Source: Hyphochytrium catenoides
Taxonomy: Eukaryota; Protista; Hyphochytriomycota
Assembly: GCA_900088475.1 (NCBI GenBank)
Contig: FLMG01002640.1
Location: forward strand, 1 to 41,695
Length of the DNA: 41,695 nt
Direction of reading: 5' to 3'
This document shows positions 1,998-41,036 of the stretch, piece after piece. Both the position numbers and the translations under genes were made by a program. Within the stretch, counting starts at the first letter, position 1; each line of letters opens with the position of its first letter. Below the pieces are notes generated by a model. The model made no database searches. It saw nothing but the letters and a program-made list of their open reading frames with translations, and had not been told where the DNA came from.

Positions 1998-2396
1998 TTA
2001 TCTTGGTAGGTTGTGTCTGGTGTCCAAGTCCACACCGAATGGCGCAAGGGACAGCCGCGCCAGCTTGAGATGCGCGTATCCAAATGGAATACCGATAATC
2101 GTGATAAACATGAACAGGGCCCATAGAAGGTGATTGACCGCCAACAATAGCCCAATTGGGAGCCACAGAATGTTCATGCAACAGGAAAGACCCCTGCCAA
2201 AGCCAAACGGTCTGGTCTCGATGTGATGAGAGAAAGGTAGGAGAGAGAGCTGCGCAATCTTGAAGCATTGCATGCCGAAGGGGATCAGGACGATGGTAAT
2301 GCAGAGTATAAGTCCAATGAAGGCCCAGAGAAAGAATGACTCGATGCCTCCAAGAAAGAGCCAGAGAACGGTGAGGAGAAAGTTTACGATGCGCAT
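1998..2396 (-). CDS. yccF: YccF/DUF307-family inner-membrane-type protein, intronless, 132 aa
   Basis: Single ATG-to-stop ORF with two internal YccF repeats: 'LWLFLGG...ILCITIVLIPFGMQCFKIAQLSLLPF' and 'MNILWLPIG...FITIIGIPFGYAHLKLARLSLAPFG'. Confidence 0.9.
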   Translation of the reverse strand: MRIVNFLLTVLWLFLGGIESFFLWAFIGLILCITIVLIPFGMQCFKIAQLSLLPFSHHIETRPFGFGRGLSCCMNILWLPIGLLLAVNHLLWALFMFITIIGIPFGYAHLKLARLSLAPFGVDLDTRHNLPR

Positions 2397-5805: not shown

Positions 5806-6176
5806 GCTGCTTTTTATTAACCAAAGACAGGAAGTTGCAGATTGCAAAGTTGCCATATAATAAAACTAAGGAAGTCCATTGTGTGCAAGAAGGAAAGCTA
5901 AGCAGATTTGTACAGAGACTCCCTACGACACTACAATGTGGAAGGATTGCCTTACAACTAACTAACGACTGGAGAAATGCTCCTAATACAGACTATTTGT
6001 AGCATCTTGATAAATATTGGACAGAAATATCTCTGTCTGACCACGGTAGGCATCTGAGAAGAGGTCTAGAGGATTGGAAGCAACTTCCTAGATGCAAATA
6101 GTGTCCTCGCAGCCCTTACAAGAGCCTCATTATTCGAACCTGTCGTGGCTCCGATGTGGAAGAACTCGGTATCGAG

Positions 6177-9100
6177 CTAAAGACCTGGTGAGTGGAGTTG
6201 ACGAAGGAAGGAGAGTGCGTCCCAGTTGTTGGTCACGTGACTAATTTTGCCAGCATCGTTGATGGAAAAAACGGCAACACCTAAGTTGCAGGCGACAGTA
6301 GGAGACGGGTTATGTTAGAGGACAAGGAAGAGCACAGCCGAGCCTGACAATCCAACGGAACAGCGCAGTCGAAGAGGCAATAGATGCAGTCTAATGGGAA
6401 GTGGATGAGGTTCACAAAGAAGTTTGGTCCTCCAGTTGACAGTACCCTAATCATTGTTTATTTATCTGCTGTCACCTCACCATTAAATCTGGCATCTCTG
6501 CTTCTCACATCAAGTTTGCCATGGTAACTTCCACAGGCTTGCCAGTCTACACGAACCTGAGAATAAGAGGAAGCAATTAGACAGCCTGTTGGCTAACAAT
6601 GCGGAGGAATGTTTGTCTCATGCTGCCTCTTACCGTACTCTTTTCGGCCTCCACCTTTGTATACCGGATGCTGAGTCCTCCTATAGCTTTTCGGATCCTC
6701 TTCACATACCGATGCAGACCCTCAGAACCTTTGAAGACTCCACCAGCGTTGTAGTCATACAGTTCAATGTGGTCCACGTCAATAATAGCCCTTATGTCCT
6801 CGGACTGAGGTTTTTATGAATAGCGTTAGAAGGGATATGTTGTTCGGCTATAAGTTGCCTGTAAAGCGTTACTTCGATGGACGTAGATACTCATAAAGAA
6901 CAGTGGAGCACAGAGGTAAGTGATACTGAGAAACTCCGACGCGGCTGACAAAAGTATTAGAGGAAATCTGTACCAGTCCGAGTTCTTACCAATAACTCCT
7001 CCTTGGATAGGTCATGGGATGAAAGGAGCTCATTCATCAGAAGTAACACCTTCATCTTGACATGATTTTCCTCCTACATGACTGGGCTTAGTAACTAAAT
7101 ATGGCTGATGGATTAACTCCGGAGAGCATATGGCTGATGGACTAGCTTCGGGGAGCATATGGCTGATGGCAGCTACAGAAGGAGGGCGGTTGTATATGAA
7201 GTATATTTACCTTGAAGTTGCTTTCCGGTGTCGGTGGTTGGCTTCTCTTCCGCGACAGTGGCGATACAGGGCTTCGCACAAGTTCTACCTCCTGTCTTTG
7301 TTTGATCAGTTCTTCGATCACCTAGCGAGATAAGTCCGCCGGCAGAGAGCATTCAATGAGTAAAGCGATAGTCAGAGTCTCACAGTAAGGGTTGAAGGCG
7401 AGCCTGTTCAAGAAAGGTGGCATATAATCCTTTGCAAGACAAAAGCGTAACTTTGACGTTATACGATGGACCCCTAACTGAATCTCAGTGTTGCCACATG
7501 GTGGTCCCCAAACTTTACCTCAAAGCCTCCAAGCTGCTCCATATACGTCAAGACGTCCCACTTCCAAACTGCCTCCTTGATCTTGCCGCTCACAGGGTCG
7601 AACTCCACCATCGCCATACCACCTAAATGCAGCACTAATTAGTCGCATCTCCCTGTGTCATCCTGAAGGCCCGCTGTCCCAAGTGCCATTATCTTTCGCA
7701 GATGACATCAGAATGTCCTAATAACTCCTCCACAATCAAAGCGTGATTCTTACCGGTTGACACCTCTCTAGGCTCCAACAGGTGCTGTGCATGGATCATC
7801 CACATGAACATGGTCTACACACAAAGACCTTAAGCCTAGCTCCGTCACACGAGGCAGACGAAGACATCGCAAACGAGAGGTCTAGGAGCTTGCAAGAAAG
7901 GCTTCACAAGCAGCACCACGATCTACCTTATGATCTTTTAGGATTAGACCTCTGTCTATCTCAATGCGCTTCGGAAGGTGGACGTACTGGCCCATTCTCT
8001 TCCTCTCTCGCTTGATTGCCTCAATCATGGCGTCGATACCTTGGATAACGGTAGACCCCTGACAAAACGTGGAATAGGACGAAGCCAAACCCCAGATCTT
8101 TGGTCAGTTCTACATTCAGTGCGTAGAATAATAACACACAGCGTTGTTAAAAATGAGGGCATACAGGGATTAAAATGAAGTAGCTGTTGGGATTCGCTGC
8201 GTTTGATGGAGATTGCTCTATACAAAAAGCATAGTCTCTTACCGGCCTTGGAGTTCCTGTTCCTGAGCGCTTTATAATAGTCTCTCTAATGATGGAGGTG
8301 AACGGCATTTGGAGACGACAGTCTGCGATAGAACACCAAAAAGAGCCAAGAGGGACTTAGGTTGGATAGAGAGGAACAACGCTCGTAACCTTCTTTTTAG
8401 ATAGAAGCCTCTCGTCAGCTTGAAGTTAAGAGTCTCGCATGGAGAATGAGCTCATGTGAAGGATGGCGAACTATCAAAACGAGTGAATGAGCACTTGCGC
8501 CAAAGAAGAAGACTTAGAAGTACCAAGGAGTGGGAATACAAGCGGATCTCAGAAAGGATATACTGTACGCTGACGAACCTTGTGCGAGAATCTCTTCCCA
8601 CTTTTCTCTGTCCGTCACACACCAAGCACGATATTGAAAAAGCAACTCAATTTTTCTCTTCAGGCTCTTCATGTCTAAAGCTGAATTTCAATATAAGCCA
8701 TAACTGCAAACTAGAGAGAGACCAAACGGACACACTACAGAAGAAAGACACAGACCCACGACCACGAAACGCGTCAACCCTAGTGGTTGGAAAAAAACAG
8801 GACTCAGACAGAGTTAATGGTACCACCTAAGGGCAAGAGATTTTCCCCGCTGCTCGAGCTCCTTGGTAGTATTGCATCGCCGTCGGCTTCAAACGCATTA
8901 AAAGCCATGAACTTCGGGTCACTACAGAGAAGTGGGGCGGCATTCACCATAAGAGAAAGTGATTGCAAACAATGGCAGACTTCGACGCCACAAATAGAGG
9001 AGAGGAGTATGGACGACCCAGGCCTTGATATGCACCTTTCCACTCGTTGTTTGCGGGCTAATCTGGCACTCGTACTTTGCCCAGTTTCAGTGGGTGGGGC

Positions 9101-12100
9101 CCGATCAAGTTTCTTGTCGTTCCGAACTTTGGGAGGCTCTATCTGCTTGGAAAGCTGTATGGGAAACCGAGACGGTGAAACAGGCGCAATAGCGGTTAAT
9201 AGAGGTTTCATCCTTACCAATTTGTCGAATGAAAGTCCTTTGAAGAAGGGGTGATTTTGAACTTCTTGCGGACCATTCCTACCCAACCTCTTCGCTGGGT
9301 CCTTCTCCAGCAAGCAAACGATAAGATGCTTAGCGTGCTCTGATATCTCGGGGGCCGGTGGAAACTCCACCGAGCAGTTTGCGATCTGAAGGGGAGGATG
9401 GTTTCGACGTCAGACACGACCAACAACCATCGGTACGCGTATTGCCCTGGGAGTTCGAACATTGAGAACGTTCTTGCTTCCTCTTGGCTTAAGATGACGC
9501 CACCAATCTTATCTTCTTTCCGAGTCCGGTGACCCGGAAGCATATCTAAGCTGAACCCTCTCTAAAAATGTATTCACCTGGTAAAAAGTGCGGGAATATT
9601 CCAACGACGAGAAGGGCGTCCTCCCGTATAACATCTACAGAGTGATATTAGAAGCAGTGGGGTGATAATAGAGCTCGAAATAGGGCGGCAGCAGTATGCA
9701 GTGCTACTGAGGTGTCTCAGGGTGTTGTCCTTGGCTACTTTCTGGCTAAAACTCACCTGGTACATCAGAATGCCCAGAGACCACCAGTCAACTTCCTTTC
9801 CGTGGCCCTCTCTAGACACTAATTCTGGTGCCTGAGGTATTAACGTCAGAAAGATGGAGCAAATGGTGCTTCAGCAGATTCCGACACTCCACCGATAGCG
9901 ATCAAGTTAAAGAGACAGATAGCACAGCTAAGTAATGCGAATTAGCAGACCAATTGCCCCCTTCTCCTCACCATGTAATCTGGTGTTCCCACGATTGAGA
10001 CCAATCGCTCTCCACCCTTTCGCTTCCGCGTTGCCGTCCCAAAATCGGTCAGTACCACATGACCTTACAAGTCGGTGAGGTGGAGAGCATGGAACGTTGA
10101 ACGGTAGACGCAGTTAAGCTTCACCATCTGAGCCAATTTTTAGACTATATGAACTTACCGTCGACTCCAAGGAGAATGTTTTCCGGCTGCAATAACGAGG
10201 AGGCGTTTAGCCAAGACCAGGGACGGCGAGAGAAAAATGGATAAGGGTTGCAGTGAAGGAAGAAAAACATAAATAGCCACTGTAGTAGAGGCAACAGCAA
10301 AACGATATAATGAAAGTTATCGCACCTTCAAATCCCTGGCAGACGCGGAAGCGGGTTTCGTCGAGGAGACCAATAGTCAGTCAATGTGAGGTAGGCCAGG
10401 GGCCGGTGGACGGTACAGATAGAGGGGTTATGCAAGGACAAGGTCGTGAGGAAGTCTCGATGGGTAAAGTCTGTAGGTCTGGGCTGTGTCTGACCTGTAC
10501 ACTACTTCCTTTGAATGGAGGTAAGCAAGAGCCAGAGTAATCTCCGCAATATAAAACTCAACAGCACTCTCGGGAAGACGATATCCCTCTTGCTTCTCTA
10601 AAAGGGAGAAAATGTCACCTCCTCTGTGACATGGCGGGAAATGGGAGACGTCAGGGTCAGACAAGTTTCAGGCAAGGTTTTCTAGCAGGGTACAAATGCA
10701 GCCCCATAGTTCGGACACATAATTGGTATTTTTTATAAAAGAAGACACTCACAGCTTTCCTGGAAACGGCTGAGCGATATGGTGATAAGGTAGCTTAGTA
10801 GTGATACAGAAGGAAGTCAACCTGTACGGTGCGAGGAGCTGAGAAGACAATCTCTTACCCTACGTAGTCCTGTACGAGAAAGAGTCGGGTGGAGTCCTGA
10901 AAGGCGTAAGCCAGCCGAACCACGAATGGATGATGGATGCTCTATGCATGCGCCGTTAGTAAGTAGAGTCATGCTGAAGGCACACTACACTGGAGGGATG
11001 ATAGGTTGAAATCAGATCTGCTGGAGCTAGGATAGCTGATGGCAACGAAGGGTTTCTTTTTTACAGTACCTGCATAATGTCGTTTTCTTCAACTACTCTG
11101 TTTATGACATCCGTACGGGCAATGAATGCCTTATCTAATATCTTGATTGCGTAAATAATCCCAGTGTCTTTCTTGACGGACATCCACACCTGCATCGGAA
11201 AACGTCAGGACCTTCTAGTCCAGTGCATACCAATCCCCATCCCACCCTTTACCGGACATTTCAGTCCTCCTAACAATTAACCGCGGCCCGAAATCCGTAC
11301 GAAGTCATCTTCCCCTACTATAGTGATTCGACTCTGCCCTGAGCACTTCACACTAGTGCTTACCTCTCCATAAGCTCCTTTGCCAAGCCGTTTCAGTAGT
11401 TCAAACTCATGCCTCACATTCTAAAACGTCAAAAGTAAGTGGCGGCACATACAGGATTTTTACAATCGGCGTTAACGCCTTTGAAAAGAAGTGAAGTCCG
11501 TGAGAACCAACTAAAGAAATTATCGTAAGGCAAAGGACAAGGTACGGAGCTCGAGAGCTGGACCAAAAGAGTCATGCCATTGAAAGGATATAGGTAGTTG
11601 AAGTATGAAGTTCGTATGGTGTCTTCGTGAGTATAGTCCGGATAGCTTACTCTTATTGTCGCCTGTATAAGGTCTCCTTTCTTCAGATTCAGGCTAGGGC
11701 TTGCGTGGAGATGGGCACTCTCCTCTTCAGAGCTAAGCTTAGAAGAGAAAAAGATTGCTCTTGCTCCGAACATTAGGAGAAGAACCACCATCAAGTACCA
11801 GACTGACCAAATGAACCGGTAGACAGCACGAATGGGATAAAACACGGCATCAACGACGGCGCTTAGGTTCGCTAGGCCTAAGGGAAGAAGCAGTCCTTTG
11901 ACTCTAACGGACAAGAACATGAGAAGGCATTAGCCAGACAATAGAATTCAAGTGGTTGCTAACAGATCCCACCTGACGTGGCTGTCATCAACATCATCTT
12001 CATCGTCAGTTGGGTGCTCGAATATGTGGACAAGGTGCATTAAAACAGCCGTGCTGACGACCACGACAGCTATTACTTCTGTCATTGGTAGCTGTTGCGA

Positions 12101-12332
12101 AGACTTGATGGTAAGTCTGGAAGCTGGAAGACTCGAGGGAGATGACGCCGAGAGAGAATCATCTTCCTCCTCCCATTGACTCCGGAGGGAATTCTGAATC
12201 TCCTCCATGTGATGCAGCCAATGCTGTATTTGCTTCCCAGGTCGCCCTCGGAAGATTGAGCCGAGGGAGAACTGATTAGAGACAGAAGCTGGTCCTACAG
12301 CCTGGAAAACTCACAAAGCCGCTGAGAGGCAT
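6177..12332 (-). CDS. AGC-group Ser/Thr kinase with N-terminal hydrophobic (TM-like) segments and two C-terminal SnoaL/NTF2-like domains
   Basis: Kinase motifs across exons: LGKGAYGE|VW, YAIKIL, HHPFVVRL, YR|DLK|PENILL, DFG, SIVGTPDYM|APE, DWWSLG, RLG...HPFF. Phase-1 joins (PL|ALDMK, LAQ|DCRLQMPFT) continue into domain 1, ending 'GMAMVEFDPVSGKIKEAVWKWDVLTYMEQLG', and domain 2, ending 'GVAVFSINDAGKISHVTNNWDALSFLRQL'. Stop TAG at 6177-6179. The start (ATG 12332) and the splice near 11421-11580 are less certain. Confidence 0.8.
7099..7169. repeat. Intronic 29-bp tandem repeat, about 2.4 copies
   Basis: atatggctgatgg at 7099, 7128 and 7157, with related intervening sequences (attaactccggagagc / actagcttcggggagc). 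Confidence 0.9.
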
Positions 12333-13169: not shown

Positions 13170-14638
13170 ATGAGTTGGTTGCTGCGGAGACACAAAGAAT
13201 CAACTCTCAGCATAGCTGGCATTCAGCGACTCCTCCGCATTCGGGTTGACGTTGGCCAAGGATGGCCTAGCAGATCGGGCATGGCACAATCTCACTCGCT
13301 TACTTCAATGGGCAAACACTCAGAGTGCCCTTCAGGCCTTGGTGGGCCTCAGGATAATGACCCTCGCTTCTTTAGCTATACGCACGCGCTCACAAGAGGA
13401 CTGTCTCCAGCCTTTCTTGACAGCCTGAAGCTCCATCCTCCTCCCGTTCCGATTGATATTGGCCTGGCTCATCAACAGCACGATCAGTACACCCAACTAC
13501 TTCAAAAGTTAGTGCCCAGCTTCTACGAGCTACCTGCAGAAGAGAAGTATCCGGACTGCTGCTTCGTTGAAGACACGGCCATAGTGGTGGGGAACATCGC
13601 AGTCATCACTACCATAGGTGCCCAAAGCCGGCAAGGCGAGGAGGTACGATAGCGGACAAGGCTTGTTGGAATCATGAACCTGACATTAATGTTGCCCTGG
13701 CTAATGTATCTGCCTGTCAGGCAGCAACGAAAGCAGCTCTTCAGCGGTTCTCCTCCTTAAAGACTCACCATCTCTTGGCCCCAGCCACGTTAGACGGAGG
13801 GGATGTCCTGTACCTGGATCATGATCTCTTCGTTGGTCTATCAAAAAGGACCAACCAGGACGCAGTCACACAGCTTCGGCGCATCTTCGATGATAAAGGT
13901 GAAATCGTAGCGTCGTACATGACTAGGAAAACTCTCCTAGTGGGTCTCCTTCCTGTCATTCAATTGGTTGTCCGGGCCGTCTGTCACCCTGCATCTTAAT
14001 GTTCGCCACATGGAGCTGAGCAGTCACAGTGTCTTTCGCCTCCTACTAGGTATCACTGTTCACCCCGTGCAAGTGGGCGGATCACTTCACCTTAAATCTG
14101 TCATGAGTGCTCTGGACCTAAATACCATTATAGTAGCTGACACAGAGGTGAGACTGCTCCGAAGAAAGTACGCAGTTATCCCTGCAACGATGCTGCCTGC
14201 GCGATGGGAGATACTTCGTCTTTCTTCACTGCCGGGTTCATCGTACCCAAGAAACGCTTATACTAAGTGTTGGAGGTGATTCTGACGATTGGTCTATAGG
14301 CTGGCAAGAATGTTGAAGAGCAGCTAAGGAAAGCGAGGCCACATTTGCAGTTTTTGAGAGTCCCTGACGTGGAAGCTTCAAACGTACTGCGCATTGGCAC
14401 CAACCTGGTGATTCAAGTTAGTACAATGCATCATCCTTCAATGCTGCGTGTCTTAGCGAATAATCCTATAACTTTCTTGCTACTTACTACTCAGGATGGC
14501 TTCCCAGAGAGCGAGGAAATTTTGTGCAAAGCGGCAAGAGAAAGGGGACTGCGGGTGTCGAAGCTGAAGATGTCAGAATTTATCAAGGCCGACGGCGCTC
14601 TTACATGCTGCAGCATTCTATTCTCCGCAGAAGAGTAG
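13170..14638 (+). CDS. DDAH: N(G),N(G)-dimethylarginine dimethylaminohydrolase (amidinotransferase superfamily), 5 exons
   Basis: Motifs 'YTHALTRG', 'LAHQQHDQY', 'YPDCCFVEDTA', 'SRQGE', 'LDGGDVL', 'FVGLSKRTN', 'LHLKS' and 'MSEFIKADGALTCCS'. The Asp-His-Cys triad is intact and the introns are canonical. Confidence 0.95.
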
Positions 14639-14669: not shown

Positions 14670-14727
14670 NNNNNNNNNNNNNNNNNNNNNNNNNNNNNNN
14701 NNNNNNNNNNNNNNNNNNNNNNNNNNN
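14670..14727. other. Assembly gap (N run) in intergenic/3' UTR region
   Basis: 58 N. Confidence 1.
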
Positions 14728-15044
14728 TTGGTTTTTCAACTTCCTGTTATAGTTCTTTCACAGTTGAAACACCAACATTTGCTGTACACGCTGATCCCTG
14801 ATCTCCAATGATCATCAGAGACCAACATCAAGGAAGATGACCGGAGAATGGCTCTTGTGTCCGCCCCAGAGATTTCCAGCACTCCGCCCAAGAGACCATT
14901 ATCCCGCGTGTGCAGCTTGGCGCAGAGCCGTCTTCATACTAGGGTAAAGAAGACGACCGCAAGTGGACAAAGCGGGCGGCGAAGCTTCAGAAGGACATCT
15001 TGACCAGAAAGAACGGAGGCATAGTCAAGGACCTCAATGATAAG

Positions 15045-17371
15045 ATGGTGTCTGGGGGCGAGACGAATAAGAATACATATCTTGGGCAATACGTGTCCGC
15101 CAAGGGCGCGGAGAATCTGAAGCTTTATCAGTACTCGGGAGCTGATAATTCACCTATATACAAGCATGTTCTTAGCCCTTTGGCCCAGTTCCTTGTGGAC
15201 AAGTTCGTTCCGCCTCATGTGGCCCCAAACCTGGTAGGCCGGTCTGCACAACTGTCACGTTTGAGCCACTTCTGATACTGTCATCTACGATCTCTCCATG
15301 CAGATTACTCTATCGGGTTTACTTATAGTCTCCACATCCCACTTGCTCTTCCTATACTATTGCCCTCGACTTGAAGGGGAGGCGCCAACATGGGCTTATG
15401 TGTGGGCTGGGCTANNNNNNNNNNNNNNNNNNNNNNNNNNNNNNNNNNNNNNNNNNNNNNNNNGCAAAACTGGATCGTCTTCACCTCTTGGCTTGCTATT
15501 TGACCATGGTAGGACGCTTCCTCCCGAGAGAGGGTAATTCCGGCAGGACTAAGAGCTGACATCCTCCGCCCTCGACCTACTTGCTCCTTTCTCTTCTGTT
15601 TGTCTCAATTCGCTACGTGCTGGTAGGCTGTGATGCGCTGACTGTCATCATCTCAACTGTTACACACTCCGCCACACTTCAACTGGGGCCCAACTGGACC
15701 TCTAAGGTGTTGGTGGGCTTTGGGACCCTGGTGTTTTACTTCGCAACCTGGGAAGAGTAAGGACATATTGGTCACTGTTTGTTCAGACACCCTGCATGCT
15801 GCTGTTCTCCTGTTGTGGCTTCCTCTCTGTCACGTAATGTCGCATCTGCCTTATTGCCTTGGGCATTTCCCTGTCTCCATCCTCCTCAAATTCCCCTTTA
15901 CCCATATTCTGCCCTTTAGTCGACCTTATCAGACTCCTGACTTGCCTCATCAGGTACTATACTGGGACGTTGGAGCTCCCAGCCATCAATGGTCCGTCGG
16001 AGGGCATCCTTATAGGAGTCTTTGTACAATTTCTCACGGCTTTAGTAGGTCAGTGACCTTGCAGTCTTCAGTTACGACTTTTTTGGCTTCTTTGTTGTTC
16101 TAATACTAATTGTCCATGCCACTTGCTCGTCAGGTCCTCAGTTTTGGCTGCAAGAGAGTCTAGGCCTTCGCCATAACACTTGGTTTGTTATTGTCACGGG
16201 CGCCGCTGCGGTGCCCACAATCTGGTCTAAGTAAGGCTGTTCTGATGGCTTTGTGTCTCACTTCCAGCTCTCCTCTTGGGCTTTCGCTCCACATGGATCT
16301 TGCTTCAGAATCCGGTGGCTCTTTTCCTAACTGGAGTCCCTAAGCCCTCTATTCCTGGGTTCTAGCATGGGAGGGCTTCTTCCACGAAAGTTTCTTACTT
16401 CGTCCTCCTTAGCATTCACAACGTGTACAAGTCAGTGAAAAGGAACAGAGAGAGTCTTTTCATTGCTATAAGTCGCCTGATACCTTTCATGCTTCTTAAC
16501 GTGCTGGTCATCATCTGGATTATGACCTCACCGGCAGGTAGGTTGGTGCTAGGGTGATAGCTGTACCAGATGACTTATTCATACCGCTGGTCTTCGCCCT
16601 TCTCTTTACTGTCGCTCCTGAAAGATATAATGGATTCTCATCCTCGCCTGGTGCTTTGGACGGTTGGACTCCTTAACTCAAAGCTAGTGGTGAGTCTATA
16701 CTTCTAAGTCTGACGACTATTGTGTGCAATAATTCCTGCCATCTGCAATAACGTTTGGCCCATAGTAGTTTGCATCCTAAACAGTACTAGGAGCTTCTCA
16801 CAGCACTCACTTTTCTCTTCATTAGCCACCTTTATCTAAGTGATAGTTATCCTAATCTCGCTGCCTGACTCTGCACTTTGGACCACTTCCGCTATCTTCT
16901 TTACCTTTGTTATCCTCGGTAACACGGTATGGATCTCGATATCTCACCTGCGTCCAATAGTTGCACCTGATGCTTGCCCACCTTATGATTGAGGAGTATC
17001 ATCCCTTCCGGAAAACCCTAGTTCCTATCTTCTTCATAGCTGCGCACACAGCATACAGTGCTTTTTTGGGGTGAGTGAAAGTGTAGTGTTGTTGGCTGTC
17101 CAGTCACTTTGAGCTGTGAGAGTTCTGTTCCCTACCGGGGCCTCAGAATGCTCTTCGTGATGGCCCCTGCTCTTCTACGAGCGATGCTAACCAAGGTTCT
17201 TCCTGTATCTGCAGCAAGTACCATATGGTGGATGAGGAGATGATCTTGTACGAGTTCTTTTTCATCTCCTCCCTCTCCTATGCCCACCTCGCCATCAGCG
17301 TTATCTGGGAAGTGTCAGCAGTATTAGACATTCCTATACTGACAATGCCAAAGAGAGCGAAGAGTAGTTAG
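15045..17371 (+). CDS. Choline/ethanolaminephosphotransferase (CDP-alcohol phosphatidyltransferase; CEPT/AAPT family), 9 exons
   Basis: Motifs 'NLKLYQYSGADNSPIYKHVL', 'APNL|ITLSG', 'KTGSSSPLGLLFDH|GCD' and 'FATWEE|YYTGTLELPAINGPSEG'. Multiple TM segments; stop TAG at 17369-17371. Confidence 0.95.
15415..15463. other. Assembly gap inside CEPT exon 2, covering the first half of the CDP-alcohol transferase motif
   Basis: 49 N plus 2 nt equals 17 codons and preserves the frame. The missing segment should include the DxxDGxxAR motif. Confidence 0.95.
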
Positions 17372-24111: not shown

Positions 24112-27100
24112 CTACTGCCTTTCAACAACGCCGCTCTTTCTTCCATTTATCGCTGCAATATGTCGTCTCTTCCTCTGCAGCGCATCGTTCTCATCATCGT
24201 CGAAGGACAGTACGGGGGCCGAGCGCTTATGGCTATTAACGGCTCTATTGATCAGCGCCAGATCACGGGAGGGACTCTCCCCGAAGGCGTAGAGACCTCG
24301 AGTCCTACAGATGCCAAAGGTCAGGAACAGAGGCGGAAAGGCGAGCATTCGGGGCTCGCGTACGAGATCATAGAATGAATTAGGAGAACCCCTCAACAGA
24401 GTGATAGAGATCGAGGGCACCGGAGACTGGTGGTTGGTATCCATGAAGGGCGGAAGACTGAGAGGCGGCAAATCGAAGATTCATCCCAAGCACATCCTCA
24501 AGTCCTGGGTGTTTGATGTCAAATGCGGACCAGTCTTACCTTGGCGTCATCTTCGTCAGTGGGCTGTCAGTGATGGGCCTCCGCGGAGAAAGGTAGACGT
24601 TAGAAGCTAATACCCGCTGAGGCGACTTGACATGGAGAGGAAGTGGGAGCTGCTGAATCTTTGGCGACATTGGGATCAGCTTCCGTCCGAAAGGACCCGC
24701 AGGGGGAGCGCTGGGATAACAAAGGAGCAAGCAGAGAGAAGTGAGACTTAATGTTACAGTGTGGACGACGATGCCGTCGTTGCTCAGATTGCATGACGCG
24801 GAGAATAGACTGTGGCTATATCGTGTTCCATGAGCAGACAGGGCGTCAGCAAGCCAGAGCCCGATAGTGAAAGTTACCTAGAAGTAGCCGCGACTGCGGC
24901 CGCAGCAGTCTCGTTCGCCGTCTTCACGATGTCCTTCACTATTGTCCCACTGCTTCCAGTTGCTCCGCCCTCCTTGGCTACATTATCTGCAGCTTGCTGC
25001 TGGAGAGCCTGCTGCTGGAACTGCAACAAAAACATCTTCACTTCGGGAATATACACCTATGTAGGTAGAGACAGCCGTCAGTACCAGGAGCCTTCAGTTG
25101 GACGAAGACCTTCAACCTGACGATCAAAAGGGCTTTCTACATGGTCCCAACCTAAAGATAAAGAGGTGGTTCGAAGAGAAAGCAAGCAACTACCAGCACC
25201 CTTCGGATATCCTCTCGTACCTTATTATAGAACTTGACAATGTCTCCTCTGGTGCCGTCATGTAAGATGATGTCTCTGATAACGCTGACTTTGGTCGAGT
25301 GATGGGGCATCTGCTTATACACCTGAAAGAGTCAACCGAGGCACATCGTTGTCGTAAGGTCCAATGGGAACTGCCACCTTTTGCAATAGATAAAGATAAA
25401 GATGGGAGAAAGAAGAGGATGGGCCCGAGGGCAGCCCATCAAACGAGAAGACGCCCAGCTCAGGAACAAGAAGGCCCATAACCCTTATAAACAATGGTGA
25501 TTTTTATTGCACAAACGCACCAACATAAAGACACGGACGAGCTGCAGAATGAGGGAGAAGCGCTTTTACCTCAAGTATCCCCTTGAAGGTAACCTCCGGC
25601 TTCACCTTATTCACTTTAGCAACCCCGTATATTGAGCAAAGAATAATCTGGTCCAGATGCCTGTGTCGAGGCGTTAGAGAAACGTCTGAATAATGATAAC
25701 GAACTTGCCGTAGAGGTAGAGGACTTCCCCGGCGGCGGCTTATCGCCCGCGTGGTAGGGAGCCCCAGCTTACCTGTTCTGGAGCAACTCAATGTGGTCAC
25801 TGAGAATCCACTTCACAGCTGTCCACACTTGGTCATAGAGGTCTCGCCGCAGGTCTAATCCTTTACAAAGCTCGTAAATCCGAGACGCAGACAGAGATAA
25901 AACCTGACAAAGGAGGACAAAGCAAGAGAAAGAGTGAGGGAGTAAGACCGCTATGATGATGAAGGGAAGACAACCTGACGGGGCAAGTCGGATGAGGGAC
26001 CACGCATTTCCATGAAGAGGCGATGTCAAAGAGGAGAAATGGGAGGTGTGGGTTATCGGCCCTCCACGTAGCCTGAGAGAAAGCCTTACCTTGCGGAAAA
26101 AAAGGTCAAGCACAGAAGACTTCTTCTTCGCTGCAGCGCTCGTTGTCGCGTCAGGCCCTTTCTTACTATCTGCTGCTCCGTTCTCCGTCTTCATGATACC
26201 TCCTTTCTTTGTTTTTTCCTGCTCCTCTTTCTCTTTCTCCTTCTCCCGCTGATACTGCTCTCGCAGTATGCTCCATAATGGGGAGTTGGCTGCCCAAGCA
26301 GAGCTCTCAAGAATGATTTCCTCAATCTCATTCATTCTTCTCTTTAGAAGAGAAGGAAGCTTTGGAGCGTGACGAACAAAGCTCTAGGAAGAGGAAAAAT
26401 TACGTTCAGTTTTGGTGTAAAGCTCCATATGAGAAGATGAGGGCAATTTAAGACAGCTGAGGTCTTTGATTGGGAGGAGTGTGGGACTTGAGGAAGGAGA
26501 GAAGGGAGAAATGAAGGGGTTACCTCAATGACCTTTGAAAGGTCAAAGGCCGATATGCTGAACAGCTCTAGGATCTTCGGGAAGCACAGTGTCACCAGAC
26601 TGTTCGACTTGAGAGCAACTTCCACGCTACATGCGAACAAAGCTGAAAAGCAGAGAGTACGAAAGTGAAAACGAGTTCCAATTTTTTGACAGCCTAGACC
26701 AGAAAGCGACGGACTCTTTCACTTCGCGAGACAGTATTTCGCGAGACAATTGAGTCAAAGTAACATCTCCTCTCTCTATTGTCTTACCTCGATGGAAGAC
26801 CTCATTATGAAGCAAATTGCCAAAGTCTTTCGTCTTAAGCCTCTCTTCCTCCCGGGACAGCATCTCCTCCAGTACACGGTAGTATAGGCGAACGGCCAGG
26901 ACACGAGTCTTTGTAATCCCACTGGCAGCCTCACTTTGGAGTTTTCCTCTTTCACCAGTTCTTTCGGTTCCTCTATCCACTACCTCTGTGGCAGATGAGA
27001 AGTCTAGCCCTTTCACGCTGCTAGGCTTTCTCCACGATGAGGAGGACGAGGCGTGAGAAAGAGTTATCTTCTCCGCCATCTTCTGTAACCTTTCTTCTAT

Positions 27101-29783
27101 AGCCTCAGACGGATTAGGGCCCGAGCAGGAAGAGAAGAATTCTGTTAATCGTAGGCTGGGACCCTGAAAGTCTTCCTCCAAAAGGTTTCTCATCCATTTG
27201 TTAGCCTCCATCGCTGCACTGACTGGAGTCTGAAGCAAAGACGGAGACCTCAAGAGGGATAGTGAAGAAAGAAAGGGGGTAGAGAACGGCCAAAGTCAAG
27301 AGACGGCATCGTCTTAGTATTCATGCTCAGAAAAAGCTAGCTTTGATCGCCCTTGTTCCTCCTCCACGATAGCTTTCTCCTTACCTTGGACTTGCTCCCA
27401 GTCTTTGTGGCGTGTGGAAAGGTTTGCTAGGAGAGCGTGGCGGGAAAGGGGATCGTGGAGGGACTTTTCCCTGCCAGTTCCAGGAGTGCTCAGGGAATCT
27501 CTTCTGTGGAGATTGTGGACTTCCATCTCCCTAACATAAAAAAGACAAGTTCATAAAGTTAGGTGAAGGCAATACCAAATGAGAGCTGCTTCTTCTCTCT
27601 CTCCCATTTCCCTTTCAGAAACGTACCTCCTGAAAGAGCTTTCTACTGGCACTCTTAGGTGTTGGAGGGAAGGGTCTGGCGGAGGAAGAGAGCTTTGAAG
27701 GTGTGCCGATGTTGCGGGCCAGGTCTCTGTTCATAAAGAACCTCTCATCGATAACGTTGATTTTATGGAGGAATGCTAGCTCATAGTGAGAGTACAAGCG
27801 AGACATGTCTTCCGTAAGAAACATGAAAGGCGAAGAGGTGGAAGACGCCTGGCTACTTTCTGAGACCCCCAATAGATGGAGGACCCTTTGTGCCTCCCGA
27901 TCGAAGGAAGAGTCTTCCTTTTCGCCCTCTCCCTCTTCTTGACCGAGAGAGAGAGGATCTGGACTCTTCAAAATACCTTGCTCTCTGAGTACTGCAATGG
28001 CTTTCAACACAACTAATAACCCCTGCTGGATCTAGGGACAAAGAGGACAGGAACCAAGTATTATTAAGGGACAAAGAGAACCAGGCGCGAGAGACAGATG
28101 ACGTGCTAGGGACAGATAGACAGAGAAAGGCAAGAGAGAGAGATATGAAAACCTAGAAAGTAGAGACAAAACTCTTAATCTAGAATATAGAGACAAAACG
28201 ATCTTAGAAGTAGGCGAGATATAGGACAAGTGATGGCAAGGGATACCTCAGTCTCTGAGAGCTTCGTCTCCTTGCATAAAAGCTCCATGTGTGACATCTT
28301 TCGCTCTCCTTCTCGTCCCCTTTTCTGCGTGTCTGCTGTGCCTCGTTGGGGAGATCCCATCGCGGTCAAGGCAGCAGCTACATCGATCTCAATAGGAGGT
28401 GGGTCAGAGGAAGACGAGCGAGAAGCAGGAGGGAGATAGAGAAGGGCATAGCACATAGAGCCAACCAGCACCCGGTAGCTACTGGGAATGTTGGGCTCCA
28501 CCTGCAAGCGTGGAATGAGATGCAAAGCCACAGAGAAAAGCTGTTAGCCTTAGAGCCATGAAGAACAAGAGTTACAGGAAGACACAGAGAGCTCGAGCCC
28601 AAGGATAGAAGTGCCTATATCTATGACAAAGTGGGAGGCAGGTCTAATTATAAGAAGTCGCAGACCTGTGAGATATTCTTTGATGTGACGAAGAGAAGCC
28701 AGCCGAAGTCAAAGAGTCGATCAATCAGCGATCGGTCTGAGGCAGAAGAAGGATCTCCACGGACTGTCCGACATTTGATCCATAGTTTCTGGTGACAAGA
28801 GAAAAGGACAAGATGAGATGCTGGGAATAATGACGGGCGAGAGATGCGAACGTACACATTAGCGAAGCGAAGCGAGGGCGCGGGAGGAACAAGAGACTAT
28901 GGCAGCGGTTGTAGAAGCAAAAGAGAGGCGTAAAGGCCGAAAAAGAAGAGAGCTCGACGTCGGCAAGAAACTGATCAAAGTGGCATCTCACCTGGTACTT
29001 CTTATACAGTAGACTTGCAGAGATAAAATTCTCCTTCATGTGCAAGGTAGAGTCCTTCACTGTCGGGCCGAGCGGTAACTTCTCCTGCAGCAGCGCGAGG
29101 TGCTCGAAGAATTGAACCATCGAGACACTTGTGGCACCAAGCAGCTGCGCTAGCTTCAAACCATTGCCTAGCGTCTCCTGAGAAGAATAAGGACGAGGAA
29201 GAGATGAGGGAAAACATAGTTCGTCAGAGTAGGACACATCGACTGACATAGAGGGCGACATAATAGGAAACGAAGGGGAAGAGGTTGGAAGGAAGAGGAC
29301 AGCGCCTTGCTTTTTCCCTTCTCTAACAATGGCAAGAGAAGGTTCCCTTAACTCTCCGATCTTTCTGTTCTGAGCCCCATCTCTTGTTCGGTCTACCGTA
29401 TCTCCTACCCTTACTTTCTCTCTCCCTAACTGCAAACCCAGCGTATCCTTTCTTCCTTCCCTTTTCCTATCCCAGCTTCCCTATGAAGATCATTCTTCAA
29501 GCTCAAGTAACTCACGACTATGCTCAAAATCTTCATTTCCACCTATTCCTCTCATTTGATCCTTCTTCTCTCTTACCTTTCCCTCTTCCGCGCCGTAGAT
29601 CTGTCTCACACTCGCTAGAAAGAGAGCGCAAGCGACCCAGACCAGTTCTGATGTGTTTTCTTCTGGATGGAGCCTGAGCGCAATGATCGTTCTCCATAGC
29701 TCCAACCCTTGCTGTGCTGTTTGCTCATCCAAGTTCAGTTTCCCATAGCAGATCTCGGTGAACACTTTCTCTTGTGCCACCAT
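24112..29783 (-). CDS. RBR: Retinoblastoma-related pocket protein (RB-N, RB-A, RB-B, RB-C)
   Basis: Motifs 'WVACALF', 'FGWLLFV', 'TPVSAAMEANKW', 'LYYRVLEEML...EEERL', 'FHR|SMFACSVE', 'AFDLSKVIE|SFVRH', 'IEEIILESSAW', 'LFFRK', 'NR|HLDQIILCSIYGVAKV', 'DIVKFYNK|VYIP', 'NVYLSP' and 'MTPR|TRGLYAFGESP'. Many S/T-P CDK-type sites. Confidence 0.97.
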
Positions 29784-30169
29784 CTCTCTCTTTCCACAAA
29801 GGTCTGCGACTCCGTCTCTCTCCCTCTCTCTGTCTCTCCGTCTCTCTTGGTAGCAGGAGTAGATGGGCCTTCCTCTTGTCACACGTCTTCTCGCTCAATA
29901 AGTTTTCTCTACTTCTGCCCCTCAGATGACAAAGATGCTGAAGCTTTGAGAAGGGAAGGAGTCACCTTATCCTTCGCAAGGCAGACGCAGAGGCAGAACG
30001 CTAAGAGGATAGTAGTGTGACAGATGGCGGGGGCGTGAGGAGACCGTCAAGGATGTTCTGTCCTTTGCTTCAACGCCTTTCCTCTATTCTGAACTTCAAG
30101 AACAACATGGAAGCAGACACCTTGAGTCTCTATCAACCTGGTGCACTGTAACAGAAAGCTGATGGGTCT

Positions 30170-32996: not shown

Positions 32997-33042
<46 letters not shown>

Positions 33043-34450
33043 AGAGAGAGAGATGCAGAGAGAGAGAGAGACACACACACAGAGAGAGAGAGAGAAAGGA
33101 GAGCAAGTGGGAAGATAGAGGAAGACGACCGAGAAAAAAACAGGAGGACCTCCTTCGCCCACCTGACCACCGTGGCCGCCAAGCACAGCAATAAGATTCT
33201 CATTGTCCTCCTTGAGAAAGTCGCTCACACTTTGAGAGAAGTCTGCCAACATCTCCAAGGCGCTGACCTTGGAAGCTGTCACGGGGAAGCTTTCAGTCTG
33301 AAAGCGTATTGAGGAGAGAGAAGAAGAGGGAAGTGGAGCAGAGAAGGAGAGAGAAGTGGAGAAAGGAACGGTAGGAGAAGAAAGAGAAAGAGAAGAGAGA
33401 TCCCATTCGCTGCTGATGTTATAGAACTTGATGCGGTCGGCATACTTGGCGACCAAGGTCTGGCTAGAGGCAGCGAAAGAAAGAGTGAAAGTGATAAATG
33501 AAAAGAGAGACTGAGAGTATAGAAGCACAGGCCGACTCGGAACAATGCGAAGAACAGATAGGAGGAGAGGAGAAGCAAGAGTCAGCAGTCTTTAGGGGAT
33601 AGAGTAGAAGAGACGGATAAAGGCAGGAGAGAAAGTAAACGAGAGAAGGTAAGAGAAGTGAGAGAGGAAAGGTAGAGAAAGAAAGACAAAAGTGAAAGAA
33701 AGTGCGACTAGCGAGGCGAAGAAGGCGAGAAAGAGAAAGAATAGTATCTTGTGCACAGAGCAAAATAAAAAGCAGAGAGAGTTGGAGAGAGAAAGAGGGA
33801 GAGAGGCAGAGTCTGAGAGGGGAAGAGGGAGAGAGGCAGCGGCTAAGACAGGGAGAGAAAGCCAGGGGCACAAGGGGAGAGAGAGAGGCAGAGGCATCGA
33901 GGGGGAGAGAGAGCCAGAGGCACCGAGAGAGAGAGAGCCAGAGGCACCGCGAGAGAGTTAAAGTCTCTAACCCCTTGCCTTTGCTTACCAGACTTCAGTG
34001 ACATGCGGTGATCCCGACACTAAAATCCTAGGAGTGACGTAGGTCAGGCAGAGATCAAGCTTGTGACCCGCTCCGCCATCTCCGGCAAAACTCTTCTTCC
34101 CAAGAGAAAGAGAAAGCAGAGAGCGGGTCATGTCCTCTTTTACAAAGTCAATAGAGCGTCTCAGGGAGAAGGATGCCCCATAAAGAGCTACACAATGAGC
34201 CCGCCGGTGAGAGACAGAAGAGCCGGCGAGAGGGAGTGAGAGATAAAGAGCAGAGCAGGAGATGAGGGACACGGAGACAACAACGGAGAGAGAGCCAACA
34301 CAATGCGAAGCGAAGGTTCGACTCTGATTGAAGGATTTTTCTGTATAACTTCCCTCACGCCAACAATCCTCTACTAGAGAGGTCAGGTGGGGCAACGCCT
34401 TTCACCCGGTGCGCTTTCTGCTCTCTTACTCTATTCCCTACCACCTTCAT
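31051..34450 (-). CDS. PTEN/tensin-type phosphatase plus C2 domain protein; predicted pseudophosphatase
   Basis: Phosphatase region: 'LDLCLTYVTPRILVSGSP', 'KFYNIS', 'FLKEDNENLIAV', 'LMISAYLL...ADEALKLFG', 'SSQMRYVHYY'. C2 region: 'LLGDIEVMF', 'LFSVWFNTSFI', 'IDGA', 'RFDSTFRLEVYF'. Stop TAA at 31051-31053. The first exon (ATG 34450) is less certain. Confidence 0.88.
33001..33096. repeat. (GA)n/(CA)n microsatellite in PTEN-like intron
   Basis: Long GA run with an embedded CA run. Confidence 0.95.
33905..33957. repeat. About 24-bp intronic tandem duplication
   Basis: gagagagagccagaggcaccg occurs twice. Confidence 0.85.
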
Positions 34451-34489
34451 TGTCGTCTGATCGGCTTGTCTTCCTATGGATTGCTCGCT

Positions 34490-34504
34490 CTTTCTCTCCT
34501 CTCC

Positions 34505-34552
<48 letters not shown>

Positions 34553-34611
34553 GAGTCTCCCTCTCTGTCTCTGTCTCTGTTCCTCTCTCCTGTCTCTCTC
34601 TCTCTCTCTCC
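34490..34611. repeat. (CT)n microsatellite between the divergent PTEN-like and ankyrin genes
   Basis: Long CT tract. Confidence 0.95.
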
Positions 34612-34922
34612 CATACACTTCCCTTTTTGACCTTTCACTTCTCTCACACGCACCGAAAAAATCAGCTAAATCTCAACAAGGACAATAACTAGAAAATGAT
34701 AACCTTGGAACGCCACTAATTGATCACTTTCTTGCCTGCGAAAGGTAACGAAGCTATTGACAGAGTTTTCAGAGCTTCCAATCGCTATTTTCTTCCGGAC
34801 AACGAACAGACAGAGACCAGCCACAGCCTCGTCATTATCTTAGAAGTGCTGTCGGGAGTTGCTCTTCACAGTGCCATTCGTACGAGACAGACAAGGCACT
34901 GGCACCTTGTGCTCAGGGCAAG

Positions 34923-35953
34923 ATGTCCGGCTATCAACATATGTCGCCCTCCACCCAGGCGCTGTATGACCTTGTGGAGGGCCCACAAGCTGATGAATCC
35001 AGGCTCCTAGCTATTATCAAAGAAGGCGCAGACGTGAACTGGAGAGACCCCAAACAGGTTTCTCGCGGGACTCTACCGGCTTCTTCTCCTCATATAGCGC
35101 ATTCAATCTTCTCTCTATCGATCAGCCCCCTCTCTTCCTCCCTCATACCTATCTACGCCAGAGTTTATCGTCTACGTATCCCTCTGCGTCTCTCTCACTA
35201 TCTCTGCCTGCGGCTATGCTGGTGATACTCAAAATTCGACTGAGGAGGTCATCTAACTTGTCACAGGATGGCGCTACTCCTCTTCACATCGCTTGCATTC
35301 ATAACAACATCACGGCAGCAAGGGTCCTTCTGGATAACAAGGCGGACATCACAGCTGTGATGACTCCGGTGCGAACGAGCGCTATAGCTAGCTTCTCTTA
35401 GGCAACATTCTATATACAGTTTTCATGGCTTTCATGTTACTCCTCCTCTCTCTCTCTCTGTCTCTCACTCTTTTTCTCTCACTTTCGCTCTTTCTTTCTT
35501 GACATGACTCCTTTTTTGTGTGTCTCTCTGTCTCTCCACGGCCCGGGGACTCTCCCTTTTCCCTTTCCTGTCTCCTTTCTCATCACCTCTTCGGCCTTCT
35601 ATGTCTCTCTTTCTGCTTGTCTGTTTGTCTCTCTGTCTGTCCCTCTCTGTCTATCTGTCTGTCTGTCTCTCTCCTTACGTCTCCTTTGTGTCCCTTCTCT
35701 CCTCAATACGATTGCCATGCTGTTCACTCTAACACTCTCTCGCTCTCTCCTTCGGTCGACTTAGAATCTGAACACTCCTCTCCATATCGCCTCACACCAC
35801 GGTTGGACGAAGCTAGCTCAGATGCTTGTGGAGCGAGGGAAGAATGTGAAGGTTCAGGGCGTGGATCAGCACCCCTTCAACATCCTAGAAGCGAAGAATC
35901 AGGTACTCATGCATGGTCTCTGCCTCGGTGCTCTCTCGTTCTGTCCCTTTCTC

Positions 35954-36000
<47 letters not shown>

Positions 36001-37735
36001 CTCTCTCTTTCTTTCTCTCTCTCTCTTTCTCTCGCCTGTTCTCTGTCTCTCCTGTGCTCTGTTTCTCCTTTATTCAATCTTTCGCTCTCTACAAATGATA
36101 GTCAAGTTATTCTTGAGCGCTGGAATGTTCTTCTAGACCTCTATAATCCTCCTTCTTCTTCCTCTCTTTTCTCTGAGTTGGGTTTGATCCCGTATAATAG
36201 CTCTGTTTCTCTCGGGCTGGTTTCGTCACCCGACTACCGCCTCATTCTCCGCTTTGAAGCCATTTTTGCGGCTTAGCCTCTTCATCTCTCCTTCTTAACT
36301 GCCTACTATCCCAATTCTTCTAGTGTCCTAGCACTCTCTTTCCTTTTCTCTCGTTCACCTCTAGCTTTACTCCGTCATCTCTCGCTTGCTCTATCTGTCT
36401 TTGTGTGTCTTTCTCCTTTCTGGTTCTGTCCGGCTCTGCTTTCGCTTTTCTGTCTACTGGCAGTCGTATGCTCTTTTCTTCAGCCAGTAGCTTCCTATCA
36501 CTGACTTTCTCCTTCTGCCAGTATCATAACACTCCGCTGCACAGCGCAGCCATGGCAGGAAAAAGTGATACCGTGCAGCTGCTCCTCGACCACGGAGCCA
36601 ACGTTAACGCAAGGAATGCGGTGAGGAATGAGAATAATTATAACCCTTTTCCAATACGAGTGCTTCCCCTACACTACTCTCGTCAAAGCTTCCTCTATCT
36701 TCTTTTGCTTCTCTTTCATCCTGCAGCTTGCCACAACCGCCATCTTCATGCCAGTAGTCTGCATCTGGACTATGGGCTACTGTTGACAACCTCTGTTGTC
36801 TCTTTTCTCCTCTCTACTTTATCGATCCATCTATGATCTGGCACGCTTCTTCCGTCTCTTTCTTCCTTTATTTGATCCTGTCCCCATAACGTGGTTGCGT
36901 TGGGCAGCATGTAGACCCTCGTCAAGCTTCTTTCTTCTGTACGTATCTTGTCGAATAGTCAAACATTGTACCGGTCCTTACGCCTGTGGGACTGCTGACG
37001 CTGCCCCTCGCGCCTAACCTCTCTCCCTGAGATGCTTGCTTTACTAATAGCCTGCTCCCTCGCGCCTTTACCGCTTTCACCTCCATCCCTCTGCAGAGAG
37101 GCTCAACCCCTCTGCACTTCGCTCAATACAGCGACACAGAAAACCCGGAGTTAACAATAGCCTTGCTGGCCAAGGGAGCGCTTATTGATGAGCCAGACAA
37201 GGTAAAGCTACAGGGCCCGAGGTCCTAAGACCTCTTAGGACATGAAGGAGAAGCGCGATTTTGAGGGTGGCACGAATAGGAAGGAAGATTGTGAGAGGAA
37301 GAGACACCTCCAAAGACATCTTCTCGATTCTGATGGTATTATATCTCTCAGGATGGCATCACTCCACTCGCGGTGGCCTGCACAAAGGGTCATCTGGGGG
37401 TGGCCAAGGTCCTTATCAAGAATGGCGCAAACCTGCACTATGCTGACCAGGTCCGCCTGCCCCTTGTGTCCTCTTTGTTCTGTAGTTGTTCCTTTTAGGC
37501 CGCTGTGCTTTGTAGTACACAGACTCACCTCCTATTGTTGACACTGCGCTGTCGGCTTCCATATTCTCATTCTTTCTTGTGCTCTCTCTCACTTACTTTC
37601 TCTCTCTCTTGCACAAACACACACAAACTCTCTCGTTTACGCACCGTCCTGCAGTTGGGCCGAAAGCCCATTGACCATGCCTCCGAACGCGGACACCAGG
37701 AGCTTGTGGAGGTTATCAAGAAGATGGGAGCATAA
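34923..37735 (+). CDS. Ankyrin-repeat protein, 7 exons (about 6-7 repeats)
   Basis: Exons begin DGATPLHIAC, NLNTPLHIAS, YHNTPLHSAA, RGSTPLHFA, DGITPLAVAC and LGRKPIDHAS. All introns are phase-0 GT-AG; stop TAA at 37733-37735. Confidence 0.93.
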
Positions 37736-40473: not shown

Positions 40474-41036
40474 GATTTTCAGGAGCCAGACAGAGTGCCA
40501 CCACCAGCAGGCAAACAAGAGACCGCTAGAGCATTCGAAGACACCGGCCGGGGAGACACGGGAAGAGAGAGAGGGATAAAAGGGGCGCGCACGAGAGAGA
40601 AGCTACAGACCACTCTCCGCTGCGATGAGGGTTAAGTCAGATTTGGGGCCGGTAGAGGAAGAAGGGGAGGAGGAGAAGGAGGAAGCACTAATATGACTAA
40701 CCAGGTGTATTTGCAGCAGGGAAGAAGGAGAAGATGGAAGGTTGTGTCACGGCCCGACGATGCCGCGGGAGACGTGAGGAGGAAAGCGATGTACACTTTA
40801 CCTTGCGCATCATGGAAGGCGACGAGCGACGTGGACAGAAGAGAAGAGCGAGGAAGAAAGGAGAGGAGAGGAGAGAGAGACAAGGGAGAAGAGGGACATA
40901 GAGGACGCACGCAGCAGGGGAGAAGAAAGAGAGGAAAAAGGTAGCAAAGTGGGAGAGAGAGCGAGAGAAGAGAGAGAGAGCAGAGCAACGGTAGCAGAAC
41001 GAGAGGAAGCGGAGAGGAGGCGGCCAAGAAGGGAAA

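Follow-up and report, generated by a model that had tools for sequence, protein, structure and literature searches.

Protein kinases fused to NTF2-like domains are known from CaMKII, through its hub, and from bacterial Ser/Thr kinases, in which NTF2-like domains of unknown function (DUFs) are joined via a membrane segment to kinase domains, with the NTF2-like part extracellular (PMC3924330). The kinase MKK3 of plants and Chlamydomonas has a C-terminal NTF2-like domain whose role is unreported (PMC5177658), and in M. tuberculosis, sigma-J is regulated by a fused SnoaL_2 domain (PMC5766207). In this study, we analyzed a 41,695-nucleotide (nt) stretch of Hyphochytrium catenoides DNA (contig FLMG01002640.1 of assembly GCA_900088475.1), hereafter the window. 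For a minus-strand locus at positions 6,177 to 12,332, an earlier note had proposed a single chain consisting of a hydrophobic N-terminus, an AGC kinase, and two tandem SnoaL/NTF2-like domains. The parts of this architecture were all recovered, namely the kinase, the hydrophobic front, and two NTF2-like units, referred to as D1 and D2. Their union in a single polypeptide is unproven and passes through the weakest splice donor of the model, and we assign a probability of about 0.45-0.5 to the full single chain of 24 exons and 861 residues.

Compared with the known systems, the locus would resemble CaMKII in consisting of a Ser/Thr kinase, a flexible linker, and a noncatalytic C-terminal NTF2-fold domain that exerts control via assembly (PMC3924330, PMC5177658). 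In contrast, CaMKII belongs to the CAMK group, contains one hub domain (PF08332) that forms 12-14-mers, and has a calmodulin-binding segment and no membrane segments, whereas here the signals are of the SnoaL_2/ketosteroid isomerase type, two domains stand in tandem, and the fusion itself is unproven. MKK3 is likewise a eukaryotic kinase, longer than 500 residues, that carries an NTF2-like domain at its C-terminus (PMC5177658). However, it is a STE-group MAP2K with one NTF2 domain of the nuclear transport factor type, no hydrophobic N-terminus, and plant-wide conservation, while D2 of the present locus, represented by exon s8, showed no detectable sequence relatives in the searches run. In the bacterial Ser/Thr kinases and the ECF41 sigma factors such as sigma-J, the NTF2-like or SnoaL_2 domains similarly are fused and probably ligand-responsive regulatory modules; the bacterial kinases differ in being prokaryotic and in carrying the NTF2-like part across the membrane from the kinase, whereas here the tandem units would follow a eukaryotic AGC kinase on the same side of the membrane. 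With PKA, S6K/RSK, PKC iota, ROCK, SGK, and Akt, the kinase part shares the catalytic core, the S-x-x-G-T-P-x-Y pattern of the activation loop, and a tail in which HPFF...PP and, as read by eye, a motif of the F-x-x-F type occur. The accessory modules of AGC kinases are PH, C1/C2, PDZ, and LOV domains, coiled coils, or a second kinase domain, and we know of no canonical AGC kinase with NTF2-like domains or an integral-membrane N-terminus. In our literature search, no paper reported NTF2/SnoaL domains on an AGC kinase, and none reported a bZIP protein fused to SnoaL. The claim that the architecture is unfamiliar therefore holds for AGC kinases, as judged from this literature, but not for the class as a whole, as kinases fused to NTF2-like domains are known.

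The gene under study lies on the minus strand of an intron-rich scaffold with approximately 49% G+C. Based on three-frame translation, we assembled 24 exons joined solely by GT-AG introns of 63-256 nt. The resulting model is a single open frame of 861 codons that extends from ATG 12208 to TAG 6177 and encodes, in order, three hydrophobic segments, the kinase domain, D1, and a linker exon with D2. The splice sites quoted in the earlier note were found in place on this strand (a slash marks the splice junction): CCCTTAG/gt at 8827/8826 with ttcag/CTTTAGACATG at 8681/8680, and CACAAG/gt at 8579/8578 with cgcag/ACTGT at 8323/8322. All other strings that it quoted, including both C-terminal G-K-I...W-D.L...Q-L endings and the hydrophobic stretches, are likewise read in the minus-strand sequence at the positions it gave. 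The complete open frame through 24 GT-AG exons is a point in favor of the fusion. ATG 12331, the start coordinate of an earlier reader, was rejected as the gene start; it opens just an 18-codon open reading frame (ORF; 12278-12331) that ends before the main ATG 12208 and is possibly an upstream ORF. Two plus-strand ORFs (8456-8830 and 8787-9254) were also set aside as antisense frames without a family match.

The exon set was compared with allelic variation in one DNA run of the same organism, which holds a second haplotype. Among the 40 listed single-nucleotide polymorphisms (SNPs), 31 fall in introns of the model and nine in exons, fewer than expected from the 42% of the stretch that exons occupy (P=0.0075), and all 12 listed indels are intronic. 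Seven of the nine exonic SNPs affect the third base of a codon (P=0.008), and six of eight exonic events are synonymous (P=0.004). In exon s1, the first exon of D1, each of the four SNPs is synonymous and in the third position. Judged by this variation, the exon model as a whole beats chance, and purifying selection acts on the exon set; these exon-wide statistics also count for the fusion. The second haplotype (window 6160-12150) comprises SNPs and small indels, with local divergence of 2-5% in introns, and part of it matches a contig in another run. The sample is therefore either heterozygous or of a different strain from the assembly.

The kinase domain is encoded by exons k1-k12 (8827..11420), namely k1 (11420-11364), k2 (11189-11070), k3 (10941-10859), k4 (10623-10495), k5 (10335-10326), k6 (10186-10159), k7 (10063-9972), k8 (9831-9757), k9 (9634-9578), k10 (9385-9218), k11 (9154-9036), and k12 (8921-8827). 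The spliced frame contains the glycine-rich loop GKGAYGEV, the beta3 lysine in YAIK, YRDLKPEN, DFG, and SIVGTPDYMAPE, the APE motif also being readable, and six exons match Pfam Pkinase in collinear order (positions 55-80, 83-121, 137-164, 165-189, and 223-263). Against solved structures, exon k4 gave 42 matches, all to AGC kinases, with yeast PKA the best (1fot, E=1.1e-7) and PKC iota, RSK, S6K, Akt, MRCK, and SGK among the others. Similarly, 59 of the 60 matches listed for exon k10 are AGC kinases (best ROCK2, E=1.6e-8; further ROCK1, PKA, SGK, RSK, S6K, and GRK), the sole exception among the matches listed being CaMKK1. The catalytic loop YRDLKPEN is in frame only with the 10-nt micro-exon k5, which is flanked by ctgccag/ and /gtgcga and encodes its Asp-Leu-Lys; micro-exons of this kind are easily missed by gene predictors or lost in assembly gaps. 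After the kinase core, the tail reads HPFFKGLSFDKL...PP (HPFF...PP) and then FMAFNAFE, which we take, by eye and from knowledge of the family, to be the AGC hydrophobic-type motif (F-x-x-F-[S/T/D/E]-[F/Y]). Pfam Pkinase_C did not match the k10-k12 stretch. Moreover, a 203-nt metatranscriptome contig of at least 99% identity joins k9 to k10 and k10 to k11 exactly, skipping 9155-9217, and the kinase gene is therefore transcribed and spliced. Collectively, these results show that the locus holds a genuine AGC-type kinase gene, rich in introns and with its catalytic motifs intact, in agreement with the earlier assignment.

Identical copies of this 203-nt spliced contig (window 9135-9388) occur in soil metatranscriptome runs of two different studies. 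This points to soil activity of the organism or of a very close relative, unless the two records share data.

Upstream of the kinase, two further exons were placed. Exon n1 (11973..12208) contains the putative start ATG 12208 and hydrophobic segment 1, and exon n2 (11651..11903) encodes hydrophobic segments 2 and 3 and, after them, a region rich in Ser and Glu. Exon k1 needs an upstream coding exon because a stop lies just upstream of it and there is no in-frame ATG. The sole in-phase donor that reaches k1 is 11650, which has a GTAAGC core and an atypical A at -1. The donor of n1, CAG/GTGGGA, is strong (8.1 bits), and its phase agrees with that of the n2 acceptor. If translation instead began at ATG 11920, n1 would drop out of the model. 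The support for both exons comes from the open frame, splice signals, and hydropathy, the RNA contig covering k9-k11 only. In Kyte-Doolittle analysis, the 19-residue means reach 2.44 (residues 45-63), 1.76 (82-100), and 2.16 (113-131), and in the remainder of the protein, the mean never exceeds 1.15. The hydrophobic N-terminus previously noted is thus borne out by hydropathy as three segments, which may form two or three helices.

Downstream of the kinase, unit D1 (7519..8680) comprises exons s1 (8680-8579), s2 (8322-8243), s3 (8097-7927), s4 (7814-7754), and s5 (7622-7519), with an in-frame ATG at 8672; an alternative acceptor for s3 at 8109 was rejected because it introduces an in-frame TGA. 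Unit D2 (6177..7073) comprises exons s7 (7073-6990), s8 (6804-6634), s9 (6556-6481), and s10 (6280-6177), with an in-frame ATG at 7055 and the stop TAG at 6179-6177. The two units align over 92 residues with 23% identity, and their Smith-Waterman score of 75, compared with 27.5 +/- 4.5 for shuffled sequences, was reached by none of 2000 shuffles (z about 10). In addition, the last two introns of D1 and D2 share both positions and phases. Based on the alignment and the shared introns, D1 and D2 are therefore diverged tandem duplicates.

The fold and family searches used single exons, so that the tested pieces were 33-57 residues long. Exon s8 of D2 matched Pfam SnoaL_2 with E=0.057 over profile positions 23-63 of 102 (14.5 bits; cut-off 27), and exon s10 matched TIGR02096, a ketosteroid isomerase-related family, with E=0.009 over positions 102-128 of 129 (16.3 bits; cut-off 97.1). 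Among protein-language-model neighbors with an assigned family, the ten of exon s8 all belong to the NTF2 clan (SnoaL_2, NTF2, DUF1348, DUF3804, and DUF4440), and those of exon s5 of D1 are SnoaL, LEH, DUF1348, and SnoaL_2. The earlier statement that two related units follow the kinase is thus upheld, and the sub-threshold family matches of the pieces fall in the NTF2-like clan. From these profile and neighbor signals, D1 and D2 are very probably NTF2-fold domains. PF08332, the CaMKII association domain, matched none of the D1 and D2 exons at E up to 10.

The kinase and D1 are separated by a disputed spacer (8681..8826), which is either a 146-nt intron between k12 and s1 or the end of a kinase gene followed by a 134-nt gap between its stop and the D1 ATG. 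We somewhat favor the first possibility, in which the kinase is linked to D1. The link between D1 and D2, through the putative linker exon s6 (7211..7321), is fairly probable. The exon consists of 37 codons and is Ser/Pro/Arg-rich with an R-K-R-S basophilic site. Each link was weighed against arrangements in which the locus is divided between separate genes.

Three head-to-tail genes, for the kinase and for two SnoaL-like proteins, constitute an unlikely arrangement in our estimation. Here, the kinase of approximately 514 residues would read through 8826 and end at TGA 8809-8807, the D1 protein would extend from ATG 8672 to a stop near 7477, and the D2 protein would begin at ATG 7055. The AGs before these ATGs would serve introns of 5' untranslated regions (UTRs) or spliced-leader addition, and s6 would be noncoding. 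Several observations suit this arrangement and weigh against a single chain. Scoring matrices for donors and acceptors were derived from 18 introns that lie within the kinase, D1, or D2. All 18 of these confident donors have G at -1, and in leave-one-out scoring they have a mean of 7.6 bits and never fall below 3.5. With 2.6 bits, the k12 donor, TAG/GTGGTA, is the weakest of 23 and is matched by 20% of the GT dinucleotides of the locus. The end of k12 offers two usable GT sites, both in phase 1, and phase 1 also suits both of the AGs that lie between the D1 ATG and the nearest in-frame stop before it. Because all four sites are in phase 1, a kinase-D1 phase match is expected in approximately one of three cases and is at chance level. 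The phase-matched GT-AG splice on which the one-chain claim was based therefore exists as a pair of sites, but the junction does not exceed chance. Furthermore, the unspliced kinase frame stops 7 codons past the k12 donor, approximately 30 residues after the hydrophobic-type motif, so that the kinase has a natural stop and its AGC-like tail, as read by eye, is already complete there.

The starts of D1 and D2 point in the same direction. Despite the 23% identity, helix 1 opens with Met-Lys in both units, and an acceptor-like AG lies 8 nt (D1) and 18 nt (D2) upstream of the ATG, a pattern that separate genes would show if they had a 5' UTR intron or were trans-spliced. The ATGs at 12208, 8672, 7055, 2396 (minus strand), and 13170 (plus strand) all have an acceptor-like AG 8-20 nt upstream, in the top 9-18% of AGs. 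However, an AG at 3-17 nt before an ATG is found in approximately 60% of cases by chance, and the pattern in the window is not clearly beyond chance. In addition, D1 is entered in phase 1 and D2 in phase 0, and the two were therefore not duplicated as in-frame exon modules. Taken together, the junction features describe an ancestral standalone SnoaL-like gene that was tandemly duplicated.

Further points against a single chain come from transcripts and homologs. Across 8827-8680, 7519-7321, and 7211-7073, no RNA read or contig was found in two soil metatranscriptomes, a run of unknown type, and three DNA runs, the sole RNA contig being that of k9-k11. Protein-collection and metagenome searches found no homolog with the same architecture. 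In detail, phmmer with exon s8 gave no matches among 1.84 billion representative proteins, word-indexed searches gave no matches for the stop-free k10-k12 stretch and no candidates for the s8 stretch, tblastn of s8 against plasmids matched nothing, and scans of JGI metagenomes with s3 and with k10-k12 found no relatives. The genome's own proteins are apparently outside the searched protein collection, in which the closest match of a neighboring YccF gene has 64% identity.

The spacer itself argues against three genes. Its 134-nt gap is far below any other gene gap of the window (approximately 370 nt between convergent genes, at least 400 nt between head-to-tail genes, and approximately 960 nt between divergent genes) and therefore leaves no room for a 3' UTR, a promoter, and a 5' UTR. 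With A 0.14 and T 0.42, the spacer is intron-like in composition (introns, A 0.13-0.30) and unlike the five gene flanks (A 0.22-0.31), which counts for the fusion. The spacer lacks AATAAA and AATAAT, A-rich poly(A)-type hexamers that follow two other stops in the window. The s1 acceptor (8681), with 4.5 bits in the top 12% of AGs, also favors the fusion. In the second haplotype, the spacer carries four SNPs and a 5-nt deletion. Moreover, the genes of the window alternate in strand, unlike polycistronic clusters.

For the D1-D2 link, the two strongest donors of the intervening spacer are those of the model, at 7518 (GAG/GTAAAG, 7.0 bits), exactly at the end of D1, and at 7210 (10.5 bits). Exon s6 is free of stops and fits the phases of both its neighbors, although its own acceptor is weak (1.4 bits). 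By our estimate, a strong donor at the D1 end together with an open in-phase s6 would arise by chance in roughly 2-5% of cases, which speaks against three genes. On the other side, s6 has no clear coding signal: 5% of intron windows score at least as high as its 2.0 bits in codon usage, as do 21% of the stop-free ones, from which it is indistinguishable, a further point against the single chain. The RNA-confirmed linker exon k11, with a score of -0.7, is no better than s6. Exon s6 could instead be a noncoding 5' exon of a separate D2 gene.

An arrangement of two genes, with the kinase ending at TGA 8807 and a separate tandem double-SnoaL gene (D1, s6, and D2) starting from ATG 8672, is also improbable. 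It would accord with the donors of the D1-D2 spacer, at 7.0 and 10.5 bits against 2.6 bits for kinase-D1, and with the Met at the D1 start and the natural stop of the kinase. However, it meets the same 134-nt gap with its intron-like composition, and it includes s6 with its weak acceptor. In addition, SNP 8679 precedes the D1 ATG, and its change of GCT to GCC (both Ala) is synonymous only if the frame is fused, a single data point in favor of the fusion.

That D1 and D2 instead represent an unrelated, lineage-specific alpha+beta domain with a coincidentally SnoaL-like ending and weak matches is quite unlikely. In its favor, no piece reached a curated family threshold, solved structures yielded chance matches only for s8, s3, and a two-row profile of s5 and s10, Pfam on the aligned C-terminal exons added nothing further, exon s3 alone gave no NTF2 signal and had molybdopterin-binding clusters as its atlas neighbors, and s8 has no homologs among the representative proteins. 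Against it, sub-threshold scores are expected because the pieces are so short, and four independent lines (s8 with SnoaL_2, s10 with TIGR02096, and the neighbors of s8 and s5) lead to the same clan in collinear order.

If the single chain is real, the protein would begin with an N-terminal region of two or three membrane-spanning hydrophobic helices, which would tether a catalytically competent, basophilic Ser/Thr kinase of the AGC group, with its C-tail, to the membrane. A Ser-rich linker of approximately 24 residues would connect the kinase to the first of two diverged NTF2-fold (SnoaL_2/ketosteroid-isomerase-like) domains, which would be separated by a Ser/Pro/Arg-rich linker of approximately 45 residues. 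The weak donor 8826 would be used, perhaps alternatively, and read-through to the nearby stop would yield a kinase-only isoform; a weak donor with an in-frame stop close behind also suits such a pair of kinase-only and fused forms. Free SnoaL-type proteins are dimers, and the two NTF2-like domains may likewise pack as an intramolecular pseudo-dimer. This module could regulate the kinase, or dock on it or on its tail, through hydrophobic ligand binding or a self-association like that of the CaMKII hub. The R-K-R-S site and the Ser-Pro/Thr-Pro sites of the linker are candidate (auto)phosphorylation sites, R-K-R-S being a candidate for the kinase itself. Such a gene may have arisen from a once-standalone SnoaL gene by tandem duplication and subsequent capture by the kinase gene. 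Gating of the kinase by ligand pockets, as the earlier note envisaged, is pure inference. We also regard as unlikely the broader view that NTF2-like pockets are a general-purpose regulatory and sensing module, in the role of PAS, LOV, or GAF domains and here on a membrane-anchored AGC kinase, by which a hydrophobic small molecule or self-association controls phosphorylation and transcription.

Other genes in the window include a single-exon YccF/DUF307 gene of the inner-membrane type (1998-2396, minus strand; Pfam YccF E=1e-28). The best matches are one protein of 64% identity from short Logan contigs and then mostly bacterial proteins of 44-52% identity, and the gene is possibly bacterial in origin, as judged from these matches. 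An amidinotransferase/arginine-deiminase-superfamily gene (13170-14638, plus strand; ADI E=6e-5, one exon), a retinoblastoma-family gene (25769-29900, minus strand; RB_A E=1.5e-21, RB_B E=1e-6), and an ankyrin-repeat gene (36405-36836, plus strand) were also recognized. Scaffold gaps (runs of N) lie at approximately 14671-14728 and 15420-15470. Long CT/GA microsatellites occur across the window, especially at 33000-36500 and 40600-41200. Strong strand-specific purine/pyrimidine skews track gene orientation, and the sense strand of introns is rich in pyrimidines (mean 0.56).

If the genes are separate, the locus would hold an ordinary AGC kinase beside a tandem pair of orphan SnoaL-like genes, and it would serve as a warning that phase-matched GT-AG pairs between neighboring genes are easily found by eye. 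If the fusion is true, accessory domains of the NTF2 fold, which is familiar mainly from enzymes and transport factors, would be seen for the first time in an AGC kinase. The kinase would also be unusual in its membrane anchor, and it would offer a tractable system for studying how a ligand or assembly state is passed from an NTF2-like domain to a kinase.

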